A DNA stretch of 64,000 nt from Macrostomum lignano (lineage: Eukaryota). The notes under the pieces were generated by a model. The model made no database searches, was not told where the DNA came from, and worked only from the letters and a program-made list of their open reading frames with translations. How positions within the stretch are numbered: position 1 is the first letter of the stretch; every line of letters starts with the position of its first letter. Below, piece after piece: positions 11,944 to 27,672 of the stretch. Position numbers and translations under genes: made by a program. Location of the stretch: contig NIVC01001984.1 of the NCBI GenBank assembly GCA_002269645.1, positions 152,061-216,060 of the forward strand, read 5' to 3'.

Positions 11944-12220
<277 letters not shown>

Positions 12221-12864: not shown

Positions 12865-15800
12865 CTACTGACTGACATCGACGGTGCTGGCAACTTGATT
12901 TTCAACTCCGGCCGTCACGCCATCCTTAGCTGGCCTAGATTAAAGTTTTTCAATGTTAGGCGAAATCAAAATGAATGTACTGGTTTGAAAAAATGGTTAA
13001 ATGGTAAAAAATTCGGAATCCTTGAAAGGCAGTCGGAGCTCTTGTACGTGACAAAGGTCACATAATAAATGTAAGCGCGTGACCTTGGGATCCTGTCGTG
13101 ATGTGACGATTGACCTTGTAGGCACGCGTTGATTAGGTGGGAAAATGGGACTCTAAGGTATGACCCTAGACGCGTAGATCTCGTGCGTGAATTTAAGTGC
13201 AAGAGCGTGACCTTGAAATCACGCGCTGATTGCGTGTGACTTAAATGTACACTGTAAGCACGTGACCTTGAAACCACATATAGACGGCGTGCTAGAATTC
13301 AATTACCAGCGCTTGACCTTGAGATCACGCGCTGATTGCGAGACCTTGCGAGTTAACGTGAAAACAGAAAATGCGACTGTTCTAGCACGTGACGTGGCCC
13401 GTACAGCTTCAAAAGCTTTGTTTTACTTACGTGTTCATCTGTTTTAGCTTTTCTCGATACTTGTCGCTTTCCAGCCAGAAGGCCTCCACAGGCGGGCCCC
13501 AGTCGGGCGTCTCCTTGAGAGCGGCCGTCAGTCCACCCCGACGCCAGACCTCGTAGATTCCGCAGCAGGGGATGAAGAGCACAGAGCCAACCATCATTAG
13601 CCAGCACATCGCTTCGCCCCAAATGGTGAACGGCTCCGAGTTGTAGCTTGGCGATTGGTACTTGACCAGAGAGAAGATCGCAATGAACTGCGGGTTGGTT
13701 GACGTTTTTTAGTAGGCGCATCGGTGTAGGATCACATGACAAAAAGATGATAAGGGATTTCTGCTTGCAACGCATCCACAATCTACGTCTCGTGGTTTAC
13801 TTAGGCCCTACAAGAGATTGTCTCCCATTTTTAGCCAGAATAGAAAATAGAACTTTGAACCAGCTTGTTAGGACTTAAAAATTCAGAAGTCCTAACTTCT
13901 TCAGGTTCTCAAATTAGCGGTTCCTTAACAGTTTGAAGTAGAAGTGATTGCAAAAAAACTTTTCGGTTTTAAAGTGACCTAGAATAACGCGTAGAATACT
14001 CGTACGTCTTTAACAAGCACGAGAGAAAAGTCACGTGACAAAAGATTAGATCAGCATCGGCAGAATCTTTAAGCAACCTTGCAGCGACCTTGGATCACGC
14101 AGTCAACGCGTGCTTTGACAAAAATTTATTAAAAACTTACCAAAATGAGAGCCGGAGTGATCCCAAACCAACAGGCGATCCAGTAAGGCCCCGGACGGAA
14201 TCCCAGCATCATCTGAATGTCGTTCAGAAAGTTTTTAATCCCGTACAGGTATGAGATTCCGAGCATCTCTACGAGAGCAACAACGAACAGGTTATAGTAA
14301 GCGCAGTAGTCGTTAAGCATTGAGAAATAGTAAATTCCTCCAGGACAGCACATTGGAATGCCAAGCAGAAACATGACAAGGCACACGACTGACTTGAATA
14401 TTGCCTGCTTAGTGAAGTTCTCCTGCAACCAGGGCCACTCGTCCATGCAAGCGGTCAGCACAGTTTCAACCATGGCAAATTGCGAATCGACGCCCAGCGT
14501 TAGGATCATGATGAAGAACAGCACGCTCCAAAGCGGAGCGACGGGCATGGCGGCGAGGCCCTCGGGATAGGCGACGAACGCCAGGCCCGGACCGCTCTTG
14601 GTCACCTCGGCCACCGGCAGGCCCGTCTTGTGCGCCATGAAACCGATCACCGAGAAGATGGCGAAACCGGCGAATATTGACGTGCCGCTGTTGATGCCCG
14701 CTACGATGAGGGCGTCTCTGCAATTGGTAAGTTTGCTTGGTTTTATAGTGCAGTTCGAACTGTGTGCCCCTTTTTTCAACACAATTTGTGCTGTCAACGC
14801 TATTGCGTTGTGTGCCCAAAACTTCCACAAAGTTCAGACCGGTTTTAGAGGTATTAGTGTAGTGTCAGGTGAGATTGTTGCCTTAATTTCTCGTTGTCCA
14901 ACATGTACTCTCTGTGGCTTGGGGTTTGGCTTGTAAGCCCGGGCCGATTTCATGCACAAGTCCCAACACACACGTGGAGATTTAACCCAGGGATATTTTA
15001 GCGCGAAAGAGACTGATGAGTGACGCATTTACCACTGAACTCATCTGCCTTTGTCTTCGGATCTTTAATCAAATATTTAAAGAGAATGCATTCAGTAAAA
15101 TTACATCAAGGTGTTGCCATCATTATTAATTGTCGTTTTTATAAGCGCCGTCATTTTAATAGTAGCAATGACTACTCGTATTTGTTGAAATAAGCGACTC
15201 ACTTGTAGCAATTGTTCCGAAACTTGTTATAACTGGACATGGTCGTCAGGCAGCCGAAGGCGACGCCAAGCGAGTAGAAAATCTGCACCGCCGCCGCAGA
15301 CCAGATCTTGAAAACAAATTTCCAGGAATTGCGGCTTCTAAATAAACACTTAACACCTGCTGTTAAGCAGAGCCAAAACAGATTAATTACCTCAGATGTA
15401 AGTAGCAGGCTGAAGTCCGGTTTCAAGTAGAATATGATGCCCTCCTTGGCGCCCTCCAGCGTTGCGCCGCGGATGAGGAGAATCACCAGCACGAGATAGG
15501 GAAACGTGGCGGTGAAGTACACCACCTGGGGAGGTGAAGGCAGCGCTATATGCAGCGGTATGCATTAACGAGTCCGTCAGCTCAGTAGGGTATTTACAGA
15601 AACTTTCACGACTATAAGATCGGTGTTCCATGAGCTTCACATGTGATTCAGCCTGACAGGTTCTGTCAATCCAGCTATTAATCACGCATTCATCCTGTTA
15701 GATTAATGTGTCAGTATGGTCTCCTCTATCTATATAGTTATATATATACATTTTAGTTGTTAGATAAACTTTCAGAAGATGTATCTAATAGGTAAAAAGT

Positions 15801-18800
15801 TTTTCTTAACACACTGTCTACCTGTTAGACACACTTTCTACCTGTAAGATAAACCCACTACCTGTTACGCTCGTATATAACTCTTCTATCGGTTGGATAC
15901 GTAATTATTTCGCCTGTCAGAGTCGTGACTTCAAGACTATGACCTGACCAATGTAAACACAATTTCAGATGCATAGCTAAAGTACAAACCTTGACCTGAC
16001 CACTGTAAACACAATTTCAGATGCATTGCTAAAGTACAAATCTTGACTTGACCACTGTAAGCACAATTTCAGACGCATTGCTTAAGTACAAACCTTGACT
16101 TGACCACTGTAAGCACAATTTCAGATGCAATGCTAAAGTACAAACCTAGACCTGACCACTGTAAACACAATTTCAGATAGATTGCTAAAGTACAAACCTT
16201 GACTTGACCACTGTAAACACAATTTCAGATGCATCGCTAAAGTACAAACCTTGACCTGACCACTGTAAACACAATTTCAGATAGATTGCTAAAGTACAAA
16301 CCTTGACTTGACCACTGTAAACACAATTTCAGATGCATCGCTAAAGTACAAACCTTGACCTGACCACTGTAAACACAATTTCAGATAGATTGCTAAAGTG
16401 CAAACCTTGACTTGACCACTGTAAACACAATTTCAGATGCAATGCTAAAGTACAAACCTTGACCTGACCACTGTAAACACAATTTCAGATAGATTGCTAA
16501 AGTACAAGCCTTGACCTGACAACTGTAAACACAATTTCAGATGCATCTCAAAAGCACAAACCTTCCCAGAAGTCTTGACTCCCTTGAGCAGGCACGCGTA
16601 GATGATGATCCAGGCCAACAGCAGGCACAAGGTCACGTGCCATTGCGGCGGTCCGATGGGGTCGGACATTTTCTTGATTGCTCCGTTTAAACTGGTGTAG
16701 CCCAGCATCACTCGTCTGCGCAAAGTTAAAAAGTTGAAAGGTTAAACATCAAGTTTCAGGAATGTCAGACAAGAAATTAAAACAAAAATACTGAATCAGT
16801 TTAATTGCACCTTCACTTACTCAAAGTACTGCTCGCTCGGAGTTTGATATTGAGTACAGTTGGTCTTTAAATCCTGGGAGCAGGCCTCCGGATTAGCTGT
16901 TATCGTTTAATCAAGAGTTTGGCTTAGTTTAGCTTGGAAAAGTTATTTACAGGCACTGAACAGTAGTTTGTGAGTAGCATCAGGTGCATATTGCCTTAGA
17001 AAGTAATTTTTCGTTGAAAATGGCGTCATTATCTTTAATGTTCATACCTAAGTCGCTTCTTGGGAAATTCTAAGGACGCCTCAAGATTTCGGTGCTTCCT
17101 TGACAACATCGTGGCACTTACCTGACTGATCTTGGCGCTAGTCTGACCTGATCTTGGCGCTAGTCTGACCTAATCTTGGCGCTAGCCTCACCTGATCTCG
17201 GCGCTACCCTGACCTGATCTTGGCGCCACCCTCACCTAATCTTGCCGCTAGCCTCACCTGATCTTGGCGCTACCCTCACCTGATCTCGGCGCTACCCTCA
17301 CCTGATCTTGGCGCTACCTTGATCTGATCTTGGCGCTACCCTCACCTGATCTCGGCGCTACCCTCACCTGATCTTGGCGCTAGCCTCACCTGATCTTGGC
17401 GCTAGCCTGACCTGATCTTGGCGCTACCCTGACCTTATCTTGGCGCTACTTTGACCTGATCTTGGCGCTACCCTCACCTGATCTTGGCGCTAGCCTCACC
17501 TGATCTTGGCGCTACCCTCACCTGATCTTGGCGCTAGCCTCACCTGATCTTGGCGCTACCTTGATCTGATCTTGGCGCTAGTCTGACATCCCAAATATCC
17601 AAAATCCAAGACGCTTACGATTGAAACCGGCTCTGAGATTCCCGGGCACATTGTGAGTGGCGTTGGTGGTGTTGACGCTGAGGTCCCGGCAGTGAAAGTC
17701 GTTCCAATAGTTGTTGCAATCCGCCCAGGGCACCTTGGAGTTGAATGAGGCGAACAGGTAGAACAGGGCCCAGGCTATGATCACGTTGTAGTAGATGGAG
17801 ACCAGCGCTGAGATGCTGACCATCGCCCAGCCCGTGCCTGCGGGGTGGCGGTTGTTGAGCAGTGAAACTGAGTTTAGCTGAGAAATTGACTGAGTCTTCG
17901 GGATTCTTGGATAGCCAGGGAAGCACTTCGGTTCGCAACTTCCGGAGCAGGGACTTCAGGACTTCAGGAGCTGGGTAGTTGCAACTTCAAAAACAGGAGT
18001 GACCCAGATGAATAGCCTCAGACTAAGTACAACAGAACTTCAGGAACTGGGTAGTTGGAACTTCAGGAACAGGTGTGACCCAGGTGAATAACCCCAGCCT
18101 CAGTCAAACAGAACTTAAGGAACAGGTGTGACCCAGGTAAATAACCCCAGCCTCAGTCAAACAGAACTTCAGGAACAGGTGTGACCCAGGTGAATAACCT
18201 CAGCCTCAGTCCAACAGAGCTTCAGGAACAGGTGTAAACCAGGTGAATAACCTCAGCCTCAGTCCAACAGAACTTCAGGAACAGGTGTGACCCAGGTGAA
18301 TAACCTCAGCCTCAGTCAAACAGAACTTTCAGGAACAGGTGTGACCCAGGTGAATAACCTCAGCCGCAGTCCAACAGAACTTCAGGAACAGGTGTGACCC
18401 AGGTGAATAACCCCAGCCTCAGTCAAACAGAACTTCAGGAACAGGTGTGACCCAGGTGAATAACCCCAGCCTCAGTCAAACAGAACTTCAGGAACAGGTG
18501 TGACCCAGGTGAATAACCCCAGCCTCAGTCAAACAGAACTTCAGGAACAGGTGTGACAGAGGTGAATAACCTCAGCCTCAGTCCAACAGAACTTCAGGAA
18601 CAGGTGTGACAGAGGTGAATAACCTCAGCCTCAGTCAAACAGAACATCAGGAACAGGTGTGACCCAGGTGAATAACCCCAGCCTCAGTCAAACAGAACTT
18701 CAGGAACAGGTGTGACCCAGGTCAATAACCTCAGCCTCAGTCCAACAGAACTTCAGGAACAGGTGTGACTCAGGTGAATAACCTCAGACGCAGTCCAACA

Positions 18801-19809
18801 GATACCTTTCAGCAGCGGGCACGCCTTCCAGATGGTGACGGGGCCGAGGTTGCCGAACTGACCAAACGCCACCTCCATGTAGAACAGCGGCAGGGCGGCG
18901 ACACCCAGCATGATCAGGTAGGGGATCAGAAAGGCACCTCCGCCGTTCTTATAGCACAGGTAGGGGAAGCGCCACACGTTGCCGAGGCCCACGGCGTAGC
19001 CGATGCAGGACAGCAGGAAGTCGAACTGGCCGGTCCAGTTTCCGCGAGCCTCGTTCTCGTCAGCTGCCTCGCCTTCGCCCGCCTGCGGGGCCTCCGCGCT
19101 GTTGGATGCGTTCTGCCGGGTGGGGATAGTGTGGGGAGTGACTTGTAGAGTGACTTGAGGAGTGACTTGTGGAGTGACTTGAGGAGTGACTTGTGGAGTG
19201 ACTTGAGGAGTGACTTGTGGAGTGACTTGTGGAGTGACTTGTGGAGTGACTTGTGGGGTGACTTGTGGAGTGACTTTTAACTTGTGGAGTGACATGCTGA
19301 GTGACATGTGAAGTGACTTGTGGAGTAACTTTTGGAGTGAATTGCGGAGTGACTTGTGGAGTGAACTGGGGAGTGACTTGTAGAGTGACTTGGGCTGTAA
19401 ACTTGTCGAATGACATGTGGAGTGAATTGTGAAGTGACTTTTAGAGTGACATGTGGAGTGACTTGTAGAGTGACTTTTTTAGTGACATGTGGAGTGACTT
19501 GTAGTGTGAAAGCGGAAGATAGAGTGACTGAAAGATGAGAGTGACGGTTTTTCAAGTGCCACTTCCTTAGAGGGATAATGCTAAATGAGACTGACCATTT
19601 CGTTACTATAGTAAACCTATTTTGAAAGATTTTTTTATCGATCAGCAAGTTGCAGGCACCGTATCAGAGTCTGGAGTGAATGTATCGAATTAGGAAGGAA
19701 AGACTTTTCAAGGTCAAATGGAACTCACCATCTGAATGTCGATCTGCTGAGTTCTGAAACGTTGCCCGCAGCTCAACAGACCCGTAAAAGTCTGTGCGAC
19801 TCGTTTCAT
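12865..19809 (-). CDS. SLC6 Na+/Cl- dependent transporter, amino-acid (proline/glycine, PROT/GlyT-like) clade, paralog A, 10 exons
   Basis: Exons read on the - strand, all GT-AG and phase-consistent: 19809(or 19731)-19729, 19112-18806, 17837-17619, 16896-16821, 16715-16562, 15525-15391, 15306-15203, 14717-14141, 13687-13431, 12934-12865. Motifs [68 protein letters not shown]. 633 aa from the last exon-1 ATG, 659 aa from the first. Confidence 0.93.
15940..16561. repeat. 52-bp intronic minisatellite (SLC6-A intron 5)
   Basis: About 12 units beginning at the donor; orthologous to 24673-24975. Confidence 0.9.
17120..17580. repeat. 22-bp intronic minisatellite CCTGATCTTGGCGCTACCCTCA (SLC6-A intron 3)
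   Basis: About 21 units; reverse complement of the 23205-24105 array. Confidence 0.9.
17950..18800. repeat. 53-bp intronic minisatellite (SLC6-A intron 2)
   Basis: GAACTTCAGGAACAGGTGTGACCCAGGTGAATAACC... units; reverse complement of the 21905-22610 array. Confidence 0.9.
19135..19505. repeat. 12-bp intronic minisatellite GTGACTTGTGGA (SLC6-A intron 1)
   Basis: Direct reading; mirrors 21220-21575. Confidence 0.9.
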
Positions 19810-20964
19810 TTTAACAAAAACTGAAATCAATTTTTTCTTAAATCATTTTTGAACCAGTTTTTCAGCGGCTCTTTTTCTGAACCGGAAATTTCCGGATCTC
19901 AAGCAAAGTGGAAATTTTTTTTATTTTTTTGTTATACTCAGTTGCACTTTTGCAAAAGAAAATCAAAGAGCAACAGAACTAAAAATTAAGATACACTCTG
20001 AATGCCGGGTTTTACCATAGACTATTCGCACATAGGCTAATGGAATGAAAAATTCGAATTATCTTCGAGTGTTGACTTCTTTATATTTATACCTTTTCAT
20101 ACATTGCTTTCAATTTGCATTCTGTGCATTCTTAATAATTATTTCACCTTGACGATTCTATTAAAAAAGATCATAAATTATGAATGTTTGTTACCGAATT
20201 TACATATTTATGCGTCGGAAATTTGGTTGACTTCACGCAAGCAGACCAAGACCGGGTCTGTGTCGGTCAGCCATAGCCCCACATCGTTTCTCCACAACAC
20301 TTTCCGTCTACACCTGACCTTAATTATCTTTAATAGAGGTTTTGCCATTAAAATATTTATTAGTCTACTTTACTCAATAGTTTATGCAAGTAAACTAAAT
20401 TTTACATTAACAAGCGAGTTTTCATCTCCTTCTCACTTACTCTTAGTAGGCTAGTTTAGCATTTTTCTTATTTATTTATTCTGTGGCCCAGCTGGTCTTT
20501 TTAATGGCTCAGAGTGTCGTTAAGGTTCAAGTTAGCCCTGGCGAAAGCATTTGACAGATTCATTAAAACTAATCTTCTTGAGATATGCTGGCTCTTGCAG
20601 TCATTGACAAAACTCGGTGGCTAAAGCTATCTGTATTCCATATCTTCCGAATGATATGATATAAAATTATGAACGATATTTAAACTGGTTTGCTGCTAAA
20701 TGTCTAGGGCGAAACTTCTTTTGAAATTTTGCTCTAATTTATTTATTTATTTTGTTTTTCAAAAGTACAAATATGAACTCGGTTAAAACATCTCGTTCAA
20801 TTCTGTTTTTCAGATTCTGAAAATTTAAGTTAAAAAAACCCGCATTTAATAAGTTGTTTGTGTTCTATGTTTTCTTCAACAAAATAAAGAAGAAGCAAGT
20901 TGCAGATTCTGTTACGGGGCTCTTCGGCTGCGTGCAAGGTTTCAGAACTCATTGTCAAGTCCAA
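19810..20964. promoter_or_regulatory. Putative shared bidirectional promoter / 5' region between the divergent SLC6 paralogs
   Basis: About 1.15 kb of AT-rich, repeat-free sequence between the two start codons; contains the palindrome CCGGAAATTTCCGG (19882-19895). Confidence 0.5.
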
Positions 20965-23900
20965 ATGCATATGGTGAGTCACCACTTATACTATAGCACA
21001 TGATTTACCTGTCACTTCACCAAGTGTGAGAGACGGTCAGTAAATTTACCACACCTATGGTTTTTGCGAAACAGTTGTCACTCTTTAAAAACGGTCACTT
21101 CAAATCGGTCAATCAATACAGCGGATACTTTACAACTGTACTTTACAACTGTCACTCTAGAGACAGTCACTGTTATCTACGAGTAAAAGTGTCACTTATT
21201 CCACAGGTTTCCCTCCACAAGTCACCCACAAATCACTCCAAAAGTCACTCCACAAGTCAAAATTCACTCCACAAGTCACTCCACAAGTCACTCCACAAGT
21301 CACTTAACAAGTCACTCCACAAGTCAAAAGTCACTCCACAAGTAACTCCACAAGTCACTTAACAAGTCACTCCACAAGTCAAAAGTCACTCCACAAGTAA
21401 CTCCACAAGTCACTCTACGAGTCACTCCACAAGTCACTCCACAAGTCACTCCACAAGTCACTCTACAAGTCACTCCACAAGTCACTCCACAAGTCACTCC
21501 TCAAGTCACTCCACAAGTCACTCCTCAAGTCACTCCACAAGTCACTCCTCAAGTCACTCTACAAGTCACTCCCCACACTATCCCCACCCGCCAGAACGCA
21601 TCCAACAGCGCGGAGGCCCCGCAGGCGGGCGAAGGCGAGGCAGCTGACGAGAACGAGGCTCGCGGAAACTGGACCGGCCAGTTCGACTTCCTGCTGTCCT
21701 GCATCGGCTACGCCGTGGGCCTCGGCAACGTGTGGCGCTTCCCCTACCTGTGCTATAAGAACGGCGGAGGTGCCTTTCTGATCCCCTACCTGATCATGCT
21801 GGGTGTCGCCGCCCTGCCGCTGTTCTACATGGAGGTGGCGTTTGGTCAGTTCGGCAACCTCGGCCCCGTCACCATCTGGAAGGCGTGCCCGCTGCTGAAA
21901 GGTAACTGAAGTTCTGTTAGACTGAGGCTGAGGTTATTGACCTGGGTCACACCTGTTCCTGAAGTTCTGTTAGACTGAGGCTGAGGTTATTGACCTGGGT
22001 CACACCTGTTCCTGAAGTTCTGTTGGACTGAGGCTGAGGTTATTCACCTGGTCAAACCTGTTCCTGAAGTTCTGTTGGACTGAGGCTGAGGTTATTGACC
22101 TGAGTCACACCTGTTCCTGAAGTTCTGTTGGACTGAGGCTGAGGTTATTCACCTGGGTCACACCTGTTCCTGAAGTTCTGTTGGACTGAGGCTGAGGTTA
22201 TTCACCTGGGTCACACCTGTTCCTGAAGTTCTGTTGGACTGAGGCTGAGGTTATTCACCTGGGTCACACCTGTTCCTGAAGTTCTGTTTGACTGAGCCTG
22301 AGGTTATTCACCTGGGTCAAACCTGTTCCTGAAGTTCTGTTGCACTGAGGCTGAGGTTATTCACCTGGGTCACACCTGTTCCTGAAGTTCTGTTAGACTG
22401 AGGCTGAGGTCATTCACCTGGGTCACACCTGTTCCTGAAGTTCTGTTTGACTGAGGCTGAGGTCATTCACCTGGGTCACACCTGTTCCTGAAGTTCTGTT
22501 AGACTGAGGCTGAGGTTATTCACCTGGTCAAACCTGTTCCTGAAGTTCTGTTTGACTGAGTCTGAGGTTATTCACCTGGGTCACACCTGTTCCTGAAGCT
22601 CTAACTACCCTGTTCCCGTAGCGCCAACTACCCTGTTCCTGAAGCTCCAACTACCAGTTCCTGAAGCTCTAACTACCCTGTTCCTGAAGCTCCAACTACC
22701 CTGTTCCCGTAGCGCCAACTACCCTGTTCCTGAAGCTCTAACTACCTGTTCCTGAAGCTCTAACTACCCTGTTCCTGAAGCTCTAACTACCTGTTCCTGA
22801 AGCTCCAACTACCCTGTTCCTGAAGTCCTGAAGTCCCTGCTCCGGAAGTTGCGAACCGAAGTGCTTCTCCGGCTGTCCAAGAATCCCGAAGCCTCAGTCA
22901 ATTTCTCAGCTAAACTCAGTTTCACTGCTCAACAACCGCCACCCCGCAGGCACGGGCTGGGCGATGGTCAGCATTTCAGCGCTGGTCTCCATCTACTACA
23001 ACGTGATCATAGCCTGGGCCCTGTTCTACCTGTTCGCCTCATTCAACTCCAAGGTGCCCTGGGCGGATTGCAACAACTATTGGAACGATTTTCACTGCCG
23101 GGACCTCAGCGTCAACATCACCAACGCCACTCACAATGTGCCCGGGAATCTCAGAGCCGGTTTCAATCGTAAGCGTCTTGGGTATTGGAAATTTAGGATA
23201 TCAGACTAGCGACAAGACCAGTTCAAGGTAACGCCAAGATAAAATCAGGGTAGCGCCAAGATCAAATGAGGCTAGCGCCAAGTTCAGGTGAGGCTAGCGC
23301 CAAGATCAGGTCAGGGTTGCGCCAAGATCAGGTGAGGCTAGCGCCAAGATCAGGTGAGGGTAGCGCCAAGATCAGGTGAGGCTAGCGCCAAGATCAGGTG
23401 AGGGTAGCGCCAAGATCAGATGAGGCTAGCGCCAAGATCAGGTGAGGGTAGCGCCAAGGTCAGGTGAGGCTAGCGCCAAGATCAGGTCAGGGTTGCGCCA
23501 AGATCAGGTGAGGGTAGCGCCAAGATCAGATCAAGGTAGTGCCAAGATCAGGTGAGGGTAGCGCCAAGTTCAGATCAAGGTAGTGCCAAGATCAGGTGAG
23601 GGTAGCGCCAAGATCAGATCAAGGTAGCGCCAAGATCAGATCAAGGTAGAGCCAAGATCAGGTGAGGCTAGCGCCAAGATCAGATCAAGGTAGCGCCAAG
23701 ATCAAGTGAGGCTAACGCCAAGATCAGGTGAGGGTAGCGCCAAGATCAGGTGAGGGTAGCGCCAAGATCAGGTGAGGGTAGCGCCAAGATCAGGTGAGGG
23801 TAGCGCCAAGATCAGGTGAGGCTAGCGCCAAGATAAAATCAGACTAGCGCCAAGATCAGATGAGGCTAGCGCCAAGTTCAGGTGAGGCTAGCGCCAAGAT

Positions 23901-26900
23901 CAGGTGAGGGTAGCGCCAAGATCAGATCAAGGTAGCGCCAAGATCAGGTGAGGCTAGCGCCAAGATCAGATGAGGCTAGCGCCAAGATCAGATCAAGGTA
24001 GCGCCAAGATCAGGTGAGGCTAGCGCCAAGATCAGGTGAGGGTAGCGCCAAGATCAGATCAAGGTAGCGCCAAGATCAGGGTAAGGCTAGCGCCAAGATC
24101 AGTCAGGGAAGTGCAACGATGTTGTCAAGCAAGCACCGAAATCTTGAGGCGTCCTTAGAATTTCCCAGCGAAGCGCTTTAGGTATGATTTTAAAGATAAT
24201 GACGTCATTTTCAACGAAAAATTACTTTTTAAGGCAATATGCAGCTGATGCTACTCACAAACTACTGTTCAGTGCCTGTAAATAACTTTTCTAAGCTAAA
24301 CTAAGCCAAATTCTTGATTAAACGATAACAGCTAATCCGGAGGCCTGCTCCCAGGATTTAAAGACCAACTGTACTCAATATCAAACTCCGAGCGAGCAGT
24401 ACTTTGAGTAAGTGAAGGTGCAATTAAAACTGATTCAGTATTTTTGGGTCAATTTCTCGGCTGACATCCCTAAATCTTGATGTTTAACTTTTCAACTTTT
24501 TAACTTTTTAACTTTGCGCAGACGAGTGATGCTGGGCTACACCAGTTTAAACGGAGCAATCAAGAAAATGTCGGACCCCATCGGACCGCCGCAATGGCAC
24601 GTGACCTTGTGCCTGCTGTTGGCCTGGATCATCATCTACGCGTGCCTGCTCAAGGGAGTCAAGACTTCTGGGAAGGTTTGTGCTTTTGAGATGCATCTGA
24701 AATTGTGTTTACAGTAGTCAGATCAAGGTTTGTACTTTAGCAATGCATCTGAAATTGTTTTTAAATTGGTCAGGTCAAGGTTTGTACTTTAGCATTGCAT
24801 CTGAAATTGTGTTTACAGTGGTCAGGTCAAGGTTTGTACTTTAGCAATGCATCTGAAATTGTGTTTACAGTAGTCAGGTCAAGGTTTGTACTTTAGCAAT
24901 GCATCTGAAATTGTGTTTACAGTTGTCAAGTCAAGGTTTGTGTGTTTGTGATGCACCTGATATTGTGTTTACAGGTCTGTGAGGTCGTGACTCTGACTTG
25001 TAAATAAACGGGTCTGACAGCTAGACGTGTTTGAAAACACGTGTGTTAAAAGGTGACATTACAGATGACATTTGGTATTGATAATGCCGGTACTATCTGA
25101 CGAATAAACGGACGCTGTCTTCACCTTCCCAGGTGGTGTACTTCACCGCCACATTTCCCTATCTCGTGCTGGTGATTCTCCTCATTCGCGGCGTCACGCT
25201 GGAGGGCGCCAAGGACGGCATACTTTTTTACTTGAAACCGGACTTCAGCCTGTTACTTACATCTGAGGTGATCTGTTTTGGTTTTGCTAACAGCAGGTGT
25301 TAAGTGTTTATTTAGAAGCCGCAATTCCTGGAAATTTGTTTTCAAGATCTGGTCTGCGGCGGCGGTGCAGATTTTCTACTCGCTTGGCGTCGCCTTCGGC
25401 TGCCTGACGACCATGTCCAGTTATAACAAGTTTCGGAACAATTGCTACAAGTGAGTCGCTTAGCTCAATGAGTCTGCTTCTTTTAGCGATCAATAAAGTA
25501 ACGTTTATTGCTACGTAATCTCGCCACCAGTGATGGATGCAGTTCTAAAACTGGGGGGGGAGTGCCCTTGCGCACAAAATTGACCTCATGTTACGTCGTC
25601 TGACTCTCGAGAAACCGAGTGCTTACATGCCTGTCAATGAGAAACTCAGAGTCTCTGTACACCTTGAATGAGCATAACTTTTCATCCTCAACAAACCCAA
25701 CGATCGTCACTGCAGAGATGTCCTCATCGTAGCGGGCATCAACAGCGGCACGTCAATATTCGCCGGTTTCGCCATCTTCTCGGTGATCGGTTTCATGGCG
25801 CACAAGACGGGCTTGCCGGTGGCCGAGGTGACCAAGAGCGGTCCGGGCCTGGCGTTCGTCGCCTATCCCGAGGGCCTCGCCGCCATGCCCGTCGCTCCGC
25901 TGTGGAGCGTGCTGTTCTTCATCATGATCATAACGCTGGGCGTCGATTCGCAGTTTGCTTTCGTTGAGAATGTGCTCACGACTTGCATGGACGAGTGGCC
26001 CTGGTTGCAGGAGAACTTCACTAAGCAGGCAATATTCAAGTCAGTCGTGTGCCTTGTCATGTTTCTGCTTGGCATTCCAATGTGCTGTCCTGGAGGAATT
26101 TACTATTTCTCAATGCTTAACGACTACTGCGCTTACTATAACCTGTTCGTCGTGGCTATCGTAGAGATGCTCGGAATCTCATACCTGTACGGGATTAAAA
26201 ACTTTCTGAACGACATTCAGATGATGCTGGGATTCCGTCCGGGGCCTTACTGGATCGCCTGTTGGCTTGGGATCACTCCGGCTCTCATTTTGGTAAGATT
26301 TCCTCAAACTAGAGTTGAAAGCAGACGTGGGGTGGATTCAAAATAATTTCAAGGTCACTTGAAGTTGCTGTTGTTATTTTCGTCGTTATAGTTAAAAGCT
26401 GTTGACACGTGACTTATCTTACGTTCAAGAAGCCTGAGTGAAAGTAGTTTTAAGGCTGTAACTTTTTGGCAACTTCTGCGGGTATGTCACGACCCAGTTA
26501 TGATGATTGAACATGTACGCTCGTATGTCGGAACATGCAATAAGCAAAAATTCAAATGTAGCCTTAGTCAGCTTAACTAAGGACCTCATCAATCGCGTGC
26601 GCACACGTTAGAAGCAGTCTTCTCGCGCACCGGATAAATTAAAGAGTACATGTAGCTTCATACTTTTCTGTCTCTGGCTTACTATAGTTAGTCGACATAA
26701 GATTTTTACGGTAGCGCATCTTAAAATCGATGTCAATCAACCCGCAGTTCATTGCGATCTTCTCGCTGGTCAAGTACCAATCGCCAAGCTACAACTCGGA
26801 GCCGTTCACCATTTGGGGCGAAGCGATGTGCTGGCTGATGATGGTTGGCTCTGTGCTCTTCATCCCCTGCTGCGGAATCTGCGAGGTCTGGCGTCGGGGT

Positions 26901-27672
26901 GGACTGACTGCCGCTCTCAAGGAGACGCCCGATTGGGGCCCGCCTGTGGAGGCCTTCTGGCTGGAAAGCGATAAGTATCGAGAAAAGCTGAAACAGATGA
27001 ACACGTAAGTAAAACAAAGCTTTTGAAGCTGTACGGGCATTGATTTTTTGTTCCAAGATAGCGTACATTGATTTCTGACATTCACGCGATCAACGCGTGA
27101 TCTCAAGGTTTGCAAACCTACACAGTGTACATTTATTCCAAGCACGATTAACATTAAGGGCGTACGCTTGATTTCAAGGTCACAGCGCTTGAATCTAATT
27201 TTAACGCGCGATCAACGCGTGATTTCAAGGTCACCAGCCTACGCTGTGCGGCACACATTTAATTGACACCACATACGCGTGATTTCTACGTAACACGCTT
27301 GGATGTACTTGAAATTCTCTCATGCAATCAACGGCGTGATTCAAGGGTCAACCACTTAAACAAATTCTAACACGTGATCAACGTGTGGATTTATAGGCCT
27401 CAAGAAAGCGTATGTTACGAGCTATATCTAGATACACACCAATGCAAGGAACCACTTCAAAATTAAAATGATATATAAATTCAAGGAATGTTAAAATGTA
27501 CCAGCAAACCCTCTTTAGTTATTTTCTGTGCATAATTTACATTCACGTCAATCTTCTCGACTATATTTAACTAACTGTCAGGCCAGCTACAGATCCCGTG
27601 ACAGGACATGAAAACCGGCCGGGTGTTGACGATTTCAGCCAGCCCTCGAACACGAAGGAAACCAAAACGTAA
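20965..27672 (+). CDS. SLC6 Na+/Cl- dependent transporter, amino-acid (PROT/GlyT-like) clade, paralog B, 10 exons (~642 aa)
   Basis: Exons 20965-20973, 21595-21901, 22950-23168, 24332-24407, 24522-24675, 25133-25267, 25347-25450, 25716-26292, 26748-27004, 27582-27672. The eight internal exon lengths equal those of paralog A (307, 219, 76, 154, 135, 104, 577, 257); the frame stays open to TAA. Confidence 0.93.
21220..21575. repeat. 12-bp intronic minisatellite CAAGTCACTCCA (SLC6-B intron 1)
   Basis: Direct reading. Confidence 0.9.
21905..22830. repeat. 53-bp minisatellite followed by a derived 23-bp minisatellite CTGAAGCTCTAACTACCCTGTTC (SLC6-B intron 2)
   Basis: 53-bp units to about 22610, then about 10 shorter units sharing CTGTTCCTGAAG. 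Confidence 0.9.
23205..24105. repeat. 22-bp minisatellite TAGCGCCAAGATCAGGTGAGGG (SLC6-B intron 3)
   Basis: About 40 units. Confidence 0.9.
24673..24975. repeat. 52-bp minisatellite starting at the exon 5 donor (SLC6-B intron 5)
   Basis: About 6 units of AAGGTTTGTACTTTAGCAATGCATCTGAAATTGTGTTTACAGTGGTCAGGTC. Confidence 0.9.

Follow-up and report, generated by a model that had tools for sequence, protein, structure and literature searches.

A short diverged patch over a substrate-pocket position in a gene-converted pair of SLC6 transporter genes from Macrostomum lignano

We analysed a stretch of 64,000 nucleotides (nt) from the flatworm Macrostomum lignano (assembly GCA_002269645.1, contig NIVC01001984.1, positions 152,061 to 216,060 of the forward strand), hereafter called the window, to which all positions below refer unless a contig is named. 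The window contains two adjacent genes for transporters of the SLC6 family, here called A and B, whose core coding exons are nearly identical. A few short segments in these exons differ consistently between the two genes. The largest lies in transmembrane helix 8 (TM8; other helices are numbered likewise), over a position that lines the central substrate site (S1) of related transporters. An original prediction, made from the letters of the DNA alone, held that selection blocks gene conversion over this patch and thereby keeps two substrate specificities apart, for example a proline-preferring B and an A with a different or broader preference.

The gene pair and its locus

A and B are complete ten-exon genes arranged head to head, with A running leftward and B rightward. 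Gene A (12865-19809, reverse strand) is of the Mlig012780 type and encodes a protein of 659 amino acids (aa). Its exons are e0 (19809-19729), e1 (19112-18806), e2 (17837-17619), e2b (16896-16821), e3 (16715-16562), e4 (15525-15391), e5 (15306-15203), e6 (14717-14141), e7 (13687-13431) and e8 (12934-12865). Gene B (20965-27672, forward strand), of the Mlig012133 type, encodes 642 aa in e0 (20965-20973), e1 (21595-21901), e2 (22950-23168), e2b (24332-24407), e3 (24522-24675), e4 (25133-25267), e5 (25347-25450), e6 (25716-26292), e7 (26748-27004) and e8 (27582-27672). Both models are established by translation, splice sites and annotated proteins (P0155 and P0031 for A, P0154 for B). A tblastn search of the 64-kb window for a third SLC6 copy returned matches to A and B only.

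The ends of the two genes differ strongly, in the N-terminal as well as the C-terminal tail exons. The first coding exon of A (19729-19809) begins 27 codons upstream, and that of B (20965-20973), which derives from homologous but diverged sequence, codes for MHM only. Just after e7 there is an in-frame TAA (27004-27008 in B, 13427-13431 in A), but it is not the true stop. The annotated proteins splice between AC and GTAAGT at this point and continue into e8 (27582-27672 in B, 12934-12865 in A), so that quite different C-terminal tails are formed. An alternative gene model, in which e2 is joined directly to e3 by way of a weak acceptor and the protein ends at this TAA, was rejected because the annotated proteins show the 76-nt e2b, the true e3 acceptor and the extra 3' exon. 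The statistics on differences, clustering and nonsynonymous to synonymous divergence (dN/dS) given below for the window copies (1698 nt) are based on a gene model without e2b; the analysis of six copies (1829 nt) uses the corrected model.

By sequence comparison, both proteins are ordinary SLC6 members of the GlyT/PROT/ATB0,+ branch, and existing annotation lists them as 'Transporter', without a specific name. Exon 6 alone matches the Pfam SNF family (PF00209) with E=6.5e-65 over profile positions 284-474, and its nearest solved structures are those of GlyT2 and human PROT (E ~1e-59). The full-length protein used as a search query retrieved 8000 SNF proteins, and exon 6 alone as a protein query retrieved fragments only, at no more than 47% identity. 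Aligned with LeuT, PROT, GlyT2 and ATB0,+, both A and B keep the ion-site and gating motifs (TM1 GLGN, TM6 QIF(Y/F)S, TM7 N...S and TM8 D/S-S). A LeuT fold of 12 transmembrane helices is predicted for both, given 51% identity to the solved PROT and GlyT structures. A literature search found no paper naming Mlig012133, Mlig012780 or the related M. lignano gene Mlig024770.

The genome of M. lignano is neopolyploid and difficult to assemble; its reference holds three subgenomes with approximately 1.4-2.4% divergence in single-nucleotide polymorphisms (PMC10733133). The same adjacent A/B pair is found on two more contigs of GCA_002269645.1, L001 and L002, both of which are collinear with the window. 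The three subgenomes account for the three copies, g1 (L001), g2 (the window pair, with proteins P0155 for A and P0154 for B) and g3 (L002). The g3 copy of A has a 1-nt deletion at offset 151 of exon 6 (L002:~2716) that shifts the reading frame, and the corresponding protein PAA78200.1 (P0151) has only 428 aa. Either this subgenome copy has become a pseudogene, or the deletion is an indel error of long-read sequencing.

An old duplication homogenised by gene conversion

The two genes form the arms of an inverted repeat. The B-side arm (21208-25462, forward strand) can be aligned with the A-side arm (15191-19511, reverse strand) through introns at ~89-95% identity, and the upstream region together with introns 1-4 is 89-95% identical between A and B. 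Between the arms is a diverged central spacer of 1.7 kb (19512-21207) that contains both first exons, with their different N-termini, and presumably both promoters. The N-termini, and presumably the promoters, have diverged despite a homogenised core. Exons e1-e3 and e5, which lie within the arms, have zero fixed differences between A and B.

Introns 5 and 6 are close to saturation between the two genes. Intron 5 of B (25451-25715, forward strand) is 72-74% identical to intron 5 of A (14718-15202) when alignment is forced, but 98.5-100% identical among B copies. Similarly, intron 6 of B (26293-26747, forward strand) has 61-64% identity to intron 6 of A (13688-14140) and 98% among B copies. Overall, forced global alignments of A with B give 61-74% identity for these two introns and for the 3' flank, slightly above shuffled controls, whereas the three loci agree at 97-100% within one gene type. 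Because the introns are nearly saturated between types and 97-100% identical within a type, the split between A and B must be far older than the split between the subgenomes. Nevertheless, the exons flanked by near-saturated introns 5 and 6 are 97% identical between A and B, and core exons overall are 97-100% identical. Synonymous divergence between the window copies (dS), outside the TM8 patch and a second island in exon 4, is 0.044.

Repeated gene conversion limited to exons can produce near-identical exons beside diverged introns. Two other causes of exon identity were considered and rejected. Synonymous sites frozen by codon bias do not account for it, as the identity of exon 6 to the next paralog, Mlig024770, falls to 72%; purifying selection on the protein cannot give low silent divergence beside nearly saturated introns.

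Polymorphism among the copies provides direct evidence for exchange. We aligned the six copies (A and B at g1, g2 and g3) over eight core exons (1829 nt) and found 68 variable sites, comprising 20 that are fixed between gene types, 7 at which both alleles occur in both types, and 41 that vary within one type (mostly singletons). The seven shared polymorphisms (21777, 21861, 22951, 23115, 25243, 25250 and 25809) compare with ~0.2 expected by parallel mutation (P ~3e-9). Over e1-e3 and e5 (860 nt) the A and B copies intermix completely: A of g3 differs from B of g3 at 2 sites, for instance, and A of g1 from A of g2 at 7. Hence, conversion between A and B continued after the loci separated. Exons e4, e6 and e7 cluster partly by gene type. 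At 21861 and 22951 (18846 and 17836 in A), the g2 alleles are common to A and B and are missing from both genes at g1 and g3, indicating at least one conversion within g2 that postdates the separation of the subgenomes. The gene conversion on which the original prediction relied is real, as the shared polymorphisms, the intermixed 5' exons and the contrast between saturated introns and similar exons all attest.

The introns of both arms contain matching minisatellites with unequal copy numbers. These have units of ~53 nt in intron 1 (21906-22616 in B, 18043-18802 in A), ~22 nt in intron 2 (23200-24108 and 17108-17587) and ~52 nt in intron 3 (24673-24974 and 15940-16564). In addition, 12-nt units that translate as 'VTPQ' are located upstream of exon 1 (21200-21575 in B, 19135-19510 in A). 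The minisatellites of the arms give rise to long spurious open reading frames.

If the assembly had confused haplotypes, or if B were degenerating, the patch would be biologically meaningless. The difficulty of assembling this neopolyploid (PMC10733133) and the 1-nt deletion in A of g3 would fit such a reading, but we regard it as very improbable. Three independent contigs contain this head-to-head arrangement, each with the patch, introns and tails typical of the two gene types, and the near-saturated introns and different terminal exons are far outside the 1.4-2.4% divergence of the subgenomes. Furthermore, the reading frame is intact in three of three B copies, and the ratio of replacement to synonymous polymorphism (9:39) points to purifying selection.

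A short patch of differences in TM8

The TM8 island occupies 25953-25981 of B (forward strand) and 14452-14480 of A (reverse strand). The surrounding 11 codons lie at 25951-25983 in B and at 14482-14450 in A, where the original prediction had placed them one base off (14451-14483); the sequences that it quoted for the two genes are present exactly as written. Read in order, with the B codon before the A codon, the 11 codons are CAG/CAA, TTT in both, GCT/GCC, TTC/ATG, GTT in both, GAG/GAA, AAT/ACT, GTG in both, CTC/CTG, ACG/ACC and ACT/GCT. As predicted, there are three replacements (F/M, N/T and T/A) and five synonymous changes, so that 8 of 11 codons are changed by 9 nt differences within 29 nt. 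The Phe codon of B (TTC) is at 25960-25962 and the Met codon of A (ATG), which represents the ancestral state, at 14473-14471.

The exon that contains the patch is indeed 577 nt long (25716-26292) and near-identical elsewhere. It has 18 differences in all, with nine in the 548 nt outside the patch (1.6%). The window copies of A and B have 39 differences over 1698 aligned coding nt, and a 30-33 nt window with nine of these was reached in none of 20,000 random placements (P<5e-5). The patch has sharp edges and is short.

Of the five synonymous differences, those at 25953 and 25977 are not fixed but are polymorphisms confined to the locus of the window. The fixed core, present in all B copies, consists of 7 nt at 25959-25981 and holds at three loci. 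The protein string of the patch is uniform across all A-type copies, and another string is uniform in all B-type copies. The island thus persists by gene type in all three subgenome loci, at seven sites.

Other fixed differences between A and B

The TM8 patch is not unique. The 20 fixed sites fall in seven clusters: six sites in exon 4 (25194-25228); 25719 and 25721; 25930; the seven of the TM8 patch (25959-25981); 26154 and 26158; 26765; and 26881. At least one replacement is included in six of the seven clusters. Five of the eight core exons lack any fixed difference, and in the window copies e1 and e5 are identical, e2 has three differences and e3 has one.

Exon 4 is the most divergent exon (10 of 135 nt, 7.4%). 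Its island extends from the end of TM5 into extracellular loop 3 (EL3), at 25194-25228 in B (forward strand) and 15430-15464 in A (reverse strand), with six fixed differences that include the replacements V/A, D/E and L/I. Among the window copies, five differences fall within 13 nt (25216-25228) and eight within 45 nt (P ~0.001). The island strings are fixed by gene type in all A and B copies, and comparison with the outgroup Mlig024770 divides the changes between the A and B lineages.

Off both islands there are single fixed replacements at 25930/14503 (B/A positions; I/L, start of TM8), 25721/14712 (V/A, start of TM7), 26158/14275 (I/L, TM10) and 26881/13554 (C/Y, after TM12). Two of these four (25721 and 26158) are accompanied by a fixed silent difference 2-4 nt away. 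Mismatch clusters of similar density, scattered at random across all exons, were to count against a special status of the TM8 patch. The exon-4 island and several mini-islands of 1-5 nt do count against it in part, but with five of eight core exons free of fixed differences the clusters are not placed at random.

Position of the patch in the substrate pocket

We aligned A, B, Mlig024770, LeuT, mammalian PROT, GlyT2, ATB0,+ and two invertebrate homologs with MAFFT, using a LeuT sequence that agrees with PDB 2A65 at 519 of 519 residues. TM8 is ungapped, and the proposed match of DSQFA-x to LeuT TSSIA-I359 is borne out: I359 is opposite the Phe of B and the Met of A, and LeuT A358, D369 and E370 are invariant. 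The statement that PROT (SLC6A7) reads DSQFAF here is correct for vertebrate PROT. In a pairwise alignment with human PROT (hPROT; 9wml), the Phe of B falls at F403. Thus, the variable residue maps to the S1 pocket, at LeuT I359 and hPROT F403, without gaps.

Several studies have addressed this position. In cryo-electron microscopy structures of hPROT, F403 lines a hydrophobic pocket around the pyrrolidine ring of proline and stacks on Y133, and the TM6 residue F303 is the size gatekeeper (PMC13402342). The mutation F403L raises Km from 64 to 357 uM and lowers Vmax to ~20% while strict proline specificity is retained, so that F403 was described as 'not a specificity filter' (PMC13402342). In LeuT, F259 and I359 have been proposed to act as a volumetric sensor (PMC6689989), and I359Q makes Trp a transported substrate (PMC9599917). 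The residue at the I359 position is specific to subfamilies, being Leu in GlyT1, Thr in GlyT2 and Ser in ATB0,+ (PMC9564218, PMC9599917).

At the remaining pocket residues listed for hPROT (Y53, G56, G58, Y133, Y297, G300, F303 and S399) A is identical to B, and the same is true of the ion-site and gating residues N59, Y79, Q294, S298, N330, S334, L395 and S399. Both have Phe at the TM6 gatekeeper position (hPROT F303), where GlyT1 and GlyT2 have Trp. At the TM8 position Phe is found in B only, and A has Met, as do most invertebrate homologs. Phe versus Met is consequently the sole A/B difference in the set of pocket residues given for hPROT. If TM8 follows simple helical periodicity, the replacements at i, i+3 and i+7 would be at 0, 300 and 340 degrees, on one face of the helix.

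Direction of change and origin of the patch

The outgroup paralog Mlig024770 reads FAMMETVLTA across the patch. It equals A at six of the seven fixed sites and neither gene at the seventh. In a survey of 153 homologs with a matchable TM8 motif, the pocket residue sorts by subfamily, with Phe in vertebrate PROT, Thr in GlyT2 and Ser or Thr in ATB0,+. Met occurs in most invertebrate GlyT/PROT-like proteins, including those of flatworms, annelids, nemerteans, echinoderms, hemichordates and amphioxus. The Thr of the 'ET' pair is replaced by Asn in B copies only, among the ungapped matches surveyed. Because the outgroup is A-like at six of seven sites and Met is common in invertebrate homologs, these comparisons identify the B patch as derived (M>F, T>N and A>T), with A keeping the ancestral state.

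Judging from the same homologs, the Phe of B is convergent with vertebrate PROT. By identity, the nearest relatives of A and B are each other and then Mlig024770 (66%), and vertebrate PROT, GlyT1/2-like and amphioxus proteins are all at ~50%; this ranking does not support orthology to vertebrate SLC6A7. The protein collection yielded no ortholog from any other species of Macrostomum; the next matches in it are 66% and 56% identical.

The patch could have arisen in the B lineage in one step, by a short ectopic conversion from a distant third SLC6 paralog or by clustered mutation during templated or error-prone repair, and simply not yet have been converted back. Its short length and sharp edges would fit such an event, as would the observation that at six of seven fixed sites the outgroup equals A, so that silent and replacement changes alike polarise to B. 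However, the outgroup is near-saturated at synonymous sites, and the polarity derives mainly from the replacements. The 64-kb window contains no template for the patch and no match of at least 10 nt elsewhere, and FAFVEN is missing from the further SLC6 clusters encountered in M. lignano (Mlig024770, P0041 and P0120). A search for a donor with a 52-aa peptide of the B patch returned zero hits even though P0154 contains the query, and is thus uninformative about absence. Fixation in three subgenomes also places the patch before their split. On balance we consider an origin of this kind unlikely.

Persistence of the patch

Fixed differences between the gene types are enriched in replacements. 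There are 11 fixed replacement and 9 fixed synonymous differences compared with 9 and 39 among polymorphisms (Fisher P=0.007; six sequences), and the excess is still present when the TM8 patch is removed (7:6 fixed versus 9:37 polymorphic, P=0.03). Such an excess is expected if conversion wipes out neutral differences while tracts over particular residues are selected against. Within the patch, silent and replacement sites are raised together: the proportion of differing synonymous sites (pS) is 0.625, compared with 0.043 elsewhere, and dN/dS in the window copies is 0.13, compared with 0.12 in the rest of the gene. Because dN/dS equals the background, the patch looks old or imported and does not suggest rapid adaptive change. 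Positive selection alone, acting without old ancestry, was rejected as an explanation, given three fixed synonymous differences in ~8 synonymous sites of the patch versus three in ~400 elsewhere.

These data are best explained as follows. A and B are an old inverted duplicate pair of GlyT/PROT-like SLC6 genes whose core exons have been homogenised by recurrent conversion between them. In the 3' half, the introns may have diverged past the point of pairing, leaving conversion limited to exons. A few short segments, nearly all anchored on an amino-acid replacement, have escaped homogenisation, and the TM8 patch is the largest. In it, B carries a derived Phe-x-x-Asn-x-x-x-Thr and A the ancestral Met-x-x-Thr-x-x-x-Ala. 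The patch would survive through selection against conversion tracts that overwrite its residues, and linked synonymous differences would hitch-hike. We favour selection against conversion, by a modest measure, as the best-supported cause of the persistence of the patch. The part of the original prediction that invoked selection thus gains from the replacement enrichment, but it does not gain from dN/dS in the patch or from a unique position of the island.

Several points weigh against selection as the cause. Since the three loci split, no more than about five exchanges can be made out, with just one in exon 6. Because the events are so few, the survival of the patch is weak evidence on its own. 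The exon-4 island has a similar density, is located off the S1 site and contains conservative replacements only, and it indicates that islands can exist without an obvious functional anchor. The dN/dS of the patch carries no signature of adaptive protein evolution. The contrast of fixed and polymorphic differences (of the McDonald-Kreitman type) is drawn from six sequences with small counts and gives moderate support only. Finally, hPROT F403L left specificity unchanged.

Some of these points suit a neutral mosaic, in which old divergence between A and B was left by chance as a remnant between conversion tracts. The mismatch density of the patch (7-9 in <30 nt) would then block heteroduplex extension through anti-recombination by mismatch repair and let the patch last with no selection on its residues. 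The pS of the patch is as high as in the saturated introns, with dN/dS at background, the conservative changes of the EL3 island in exon 4 fell on both lineages, and few conversions have occurred since the loci split. Chance does not readily explain why fixed differences are enriched in replacements relative to polymorphism, why six of seven clusters include one, or why the changes in B strike positions that are otherwise conserved (the Met and the Thr of 'ET'). Moreover, single-site islands and those of 3-5 nt cannot be mismatch barriers. A neutral mosaic is possible, but we doubt that it is the explanation.

If selection does hold the patch apart, the functional difference would most likely lie in pocket volume and packing, with effects on affinity, turnover and perhaps also on which small neutral amino acids are preferred. 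Judging from mutagenesis of hPROT, it is probably an overstatement to speak of two substrate specificities. By the same analogy, a difference in kinetics or affinity is no less likely than a switch in specificity, and a complete change of substrate class would be less probable. As the tails and presumably the promoters of A and B differ, the two may also have become subfunctionalised through regulation. We infer that A and B differ in function, as we infer that selection caused the patch to persist. A more specific idea is that B is an independently evolved, PROT-like high-affinity transporter of proline (or of another small amino acid), in which the change from Met to Phe that defines vertebrate PROT was repeated, conversion erased the other differences, and Phe, Asn at +3 and Thr at +7 (within ~60 degrees, on one face) form a minimal co-adapted set required for the shift in function. 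This is tentative and rather improbable. If true, nature would have carried out a 'mutational scan' of the volumetric sensor of SLC6 transporters.

Parallels in other systems

Concerted evolution with protected differences is a well-known pattern. RHD/RHCE and the primate red and green opsins are further duplicates that combine conversion with protected differences, and Innan, and Teshima and Innan, are said to have developed a theory of conversion with selection-protected differences between paralogs. What is new here is this instance in SLC6, in which the largest patch lies over the volumetric-sensor position.

A close match is to the tandem ATP1A1 paralogs of Leptodactylus, which are homogenised by conversion except at selected amino-acid differences with linked silent marks (10.1101/2020.08.04.234435). 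In that system several species retain the differences, and engineered proteins demonstrated their function, whereas A and B are known within one species, in three subgenomes. The Leptodactylus genes are in tandem, whereas A and B are inverted and head to head. Y-chromosome palindromes, with gene conversion from arm to arm (PMC3403216), resemble the A/B pair in having inverted arms around a short diverged spacer, and A and B are homogenised through introns over the spacer-proximal 4.3 kb. Unlike the palindromes, which are near-identical, the A/B arms are ~90-95% identical; in the distal half only the exons are homogenised, and fixed islands interrupt the arms.

Human PROT (SLC6A7; 9wml and related structures) belongs, like A and B, to the amino-acid branch of SLC6, with ~51% identity and an ungapped TM8. 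It has DSQFAF in common with B, and F303 and the other residues of the pocket and of the Na1, Na2 and Cl- sites in common with both. A and B differ from it in being flatworm-specific duplicates rather than PROT orthologs, and the Asn at +3 in B is unusual. The residue equivalent to hPROT F309, in the cholesterol site, is Met in both A and B. The TM8 position is also that of the F259/I359 sensor of LeuT, where the size of the side chain shapes pocket volume, transport rate and substrate range in some members (e.g., I359Q). Compared with such LeuT and GlyT variants, Met and Phe are both large and hydrophobic, and by analogy the expected effect would be subtler.

If the patch is indeed maintained by selection, conversion would have acted as a mutagenesis screen, in which one residue of the S1 floor, together with two lower on that face of TM8, is what separates two near-identical transporters. 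The pair would then offer a background for the study of how I359/F403 tunes substrate handling, with Met as the ancestral state and Phe as convergent with vertebrate PROT. It also illustrates how concerted evolution limited to exons proceeds in inverted genes, in three subgenomes of a neopolyploid animal. Neither a new mechanism nor a new family is revealed.

Neighbouring gene and tandem arrays

In the other two loci, a large gene for a cadherin-repeat protein (1119 aa called) is found downstream of B on the opposite strand, located at L001:18079-26372 and L002:18055-26386, both on the reverse strand. By collinearity with these two contigs, the corresponding region of the window is at ~29.8-39 kb. 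Also present in the window are large tandem arrays with 4-nt-based and longer units ((CTGT)n-like, 'SVCL' when translated) that cross-match one another, at 1936-2159, 11944-12220, 44561-45070, 60516-62450 and 63415-64000.

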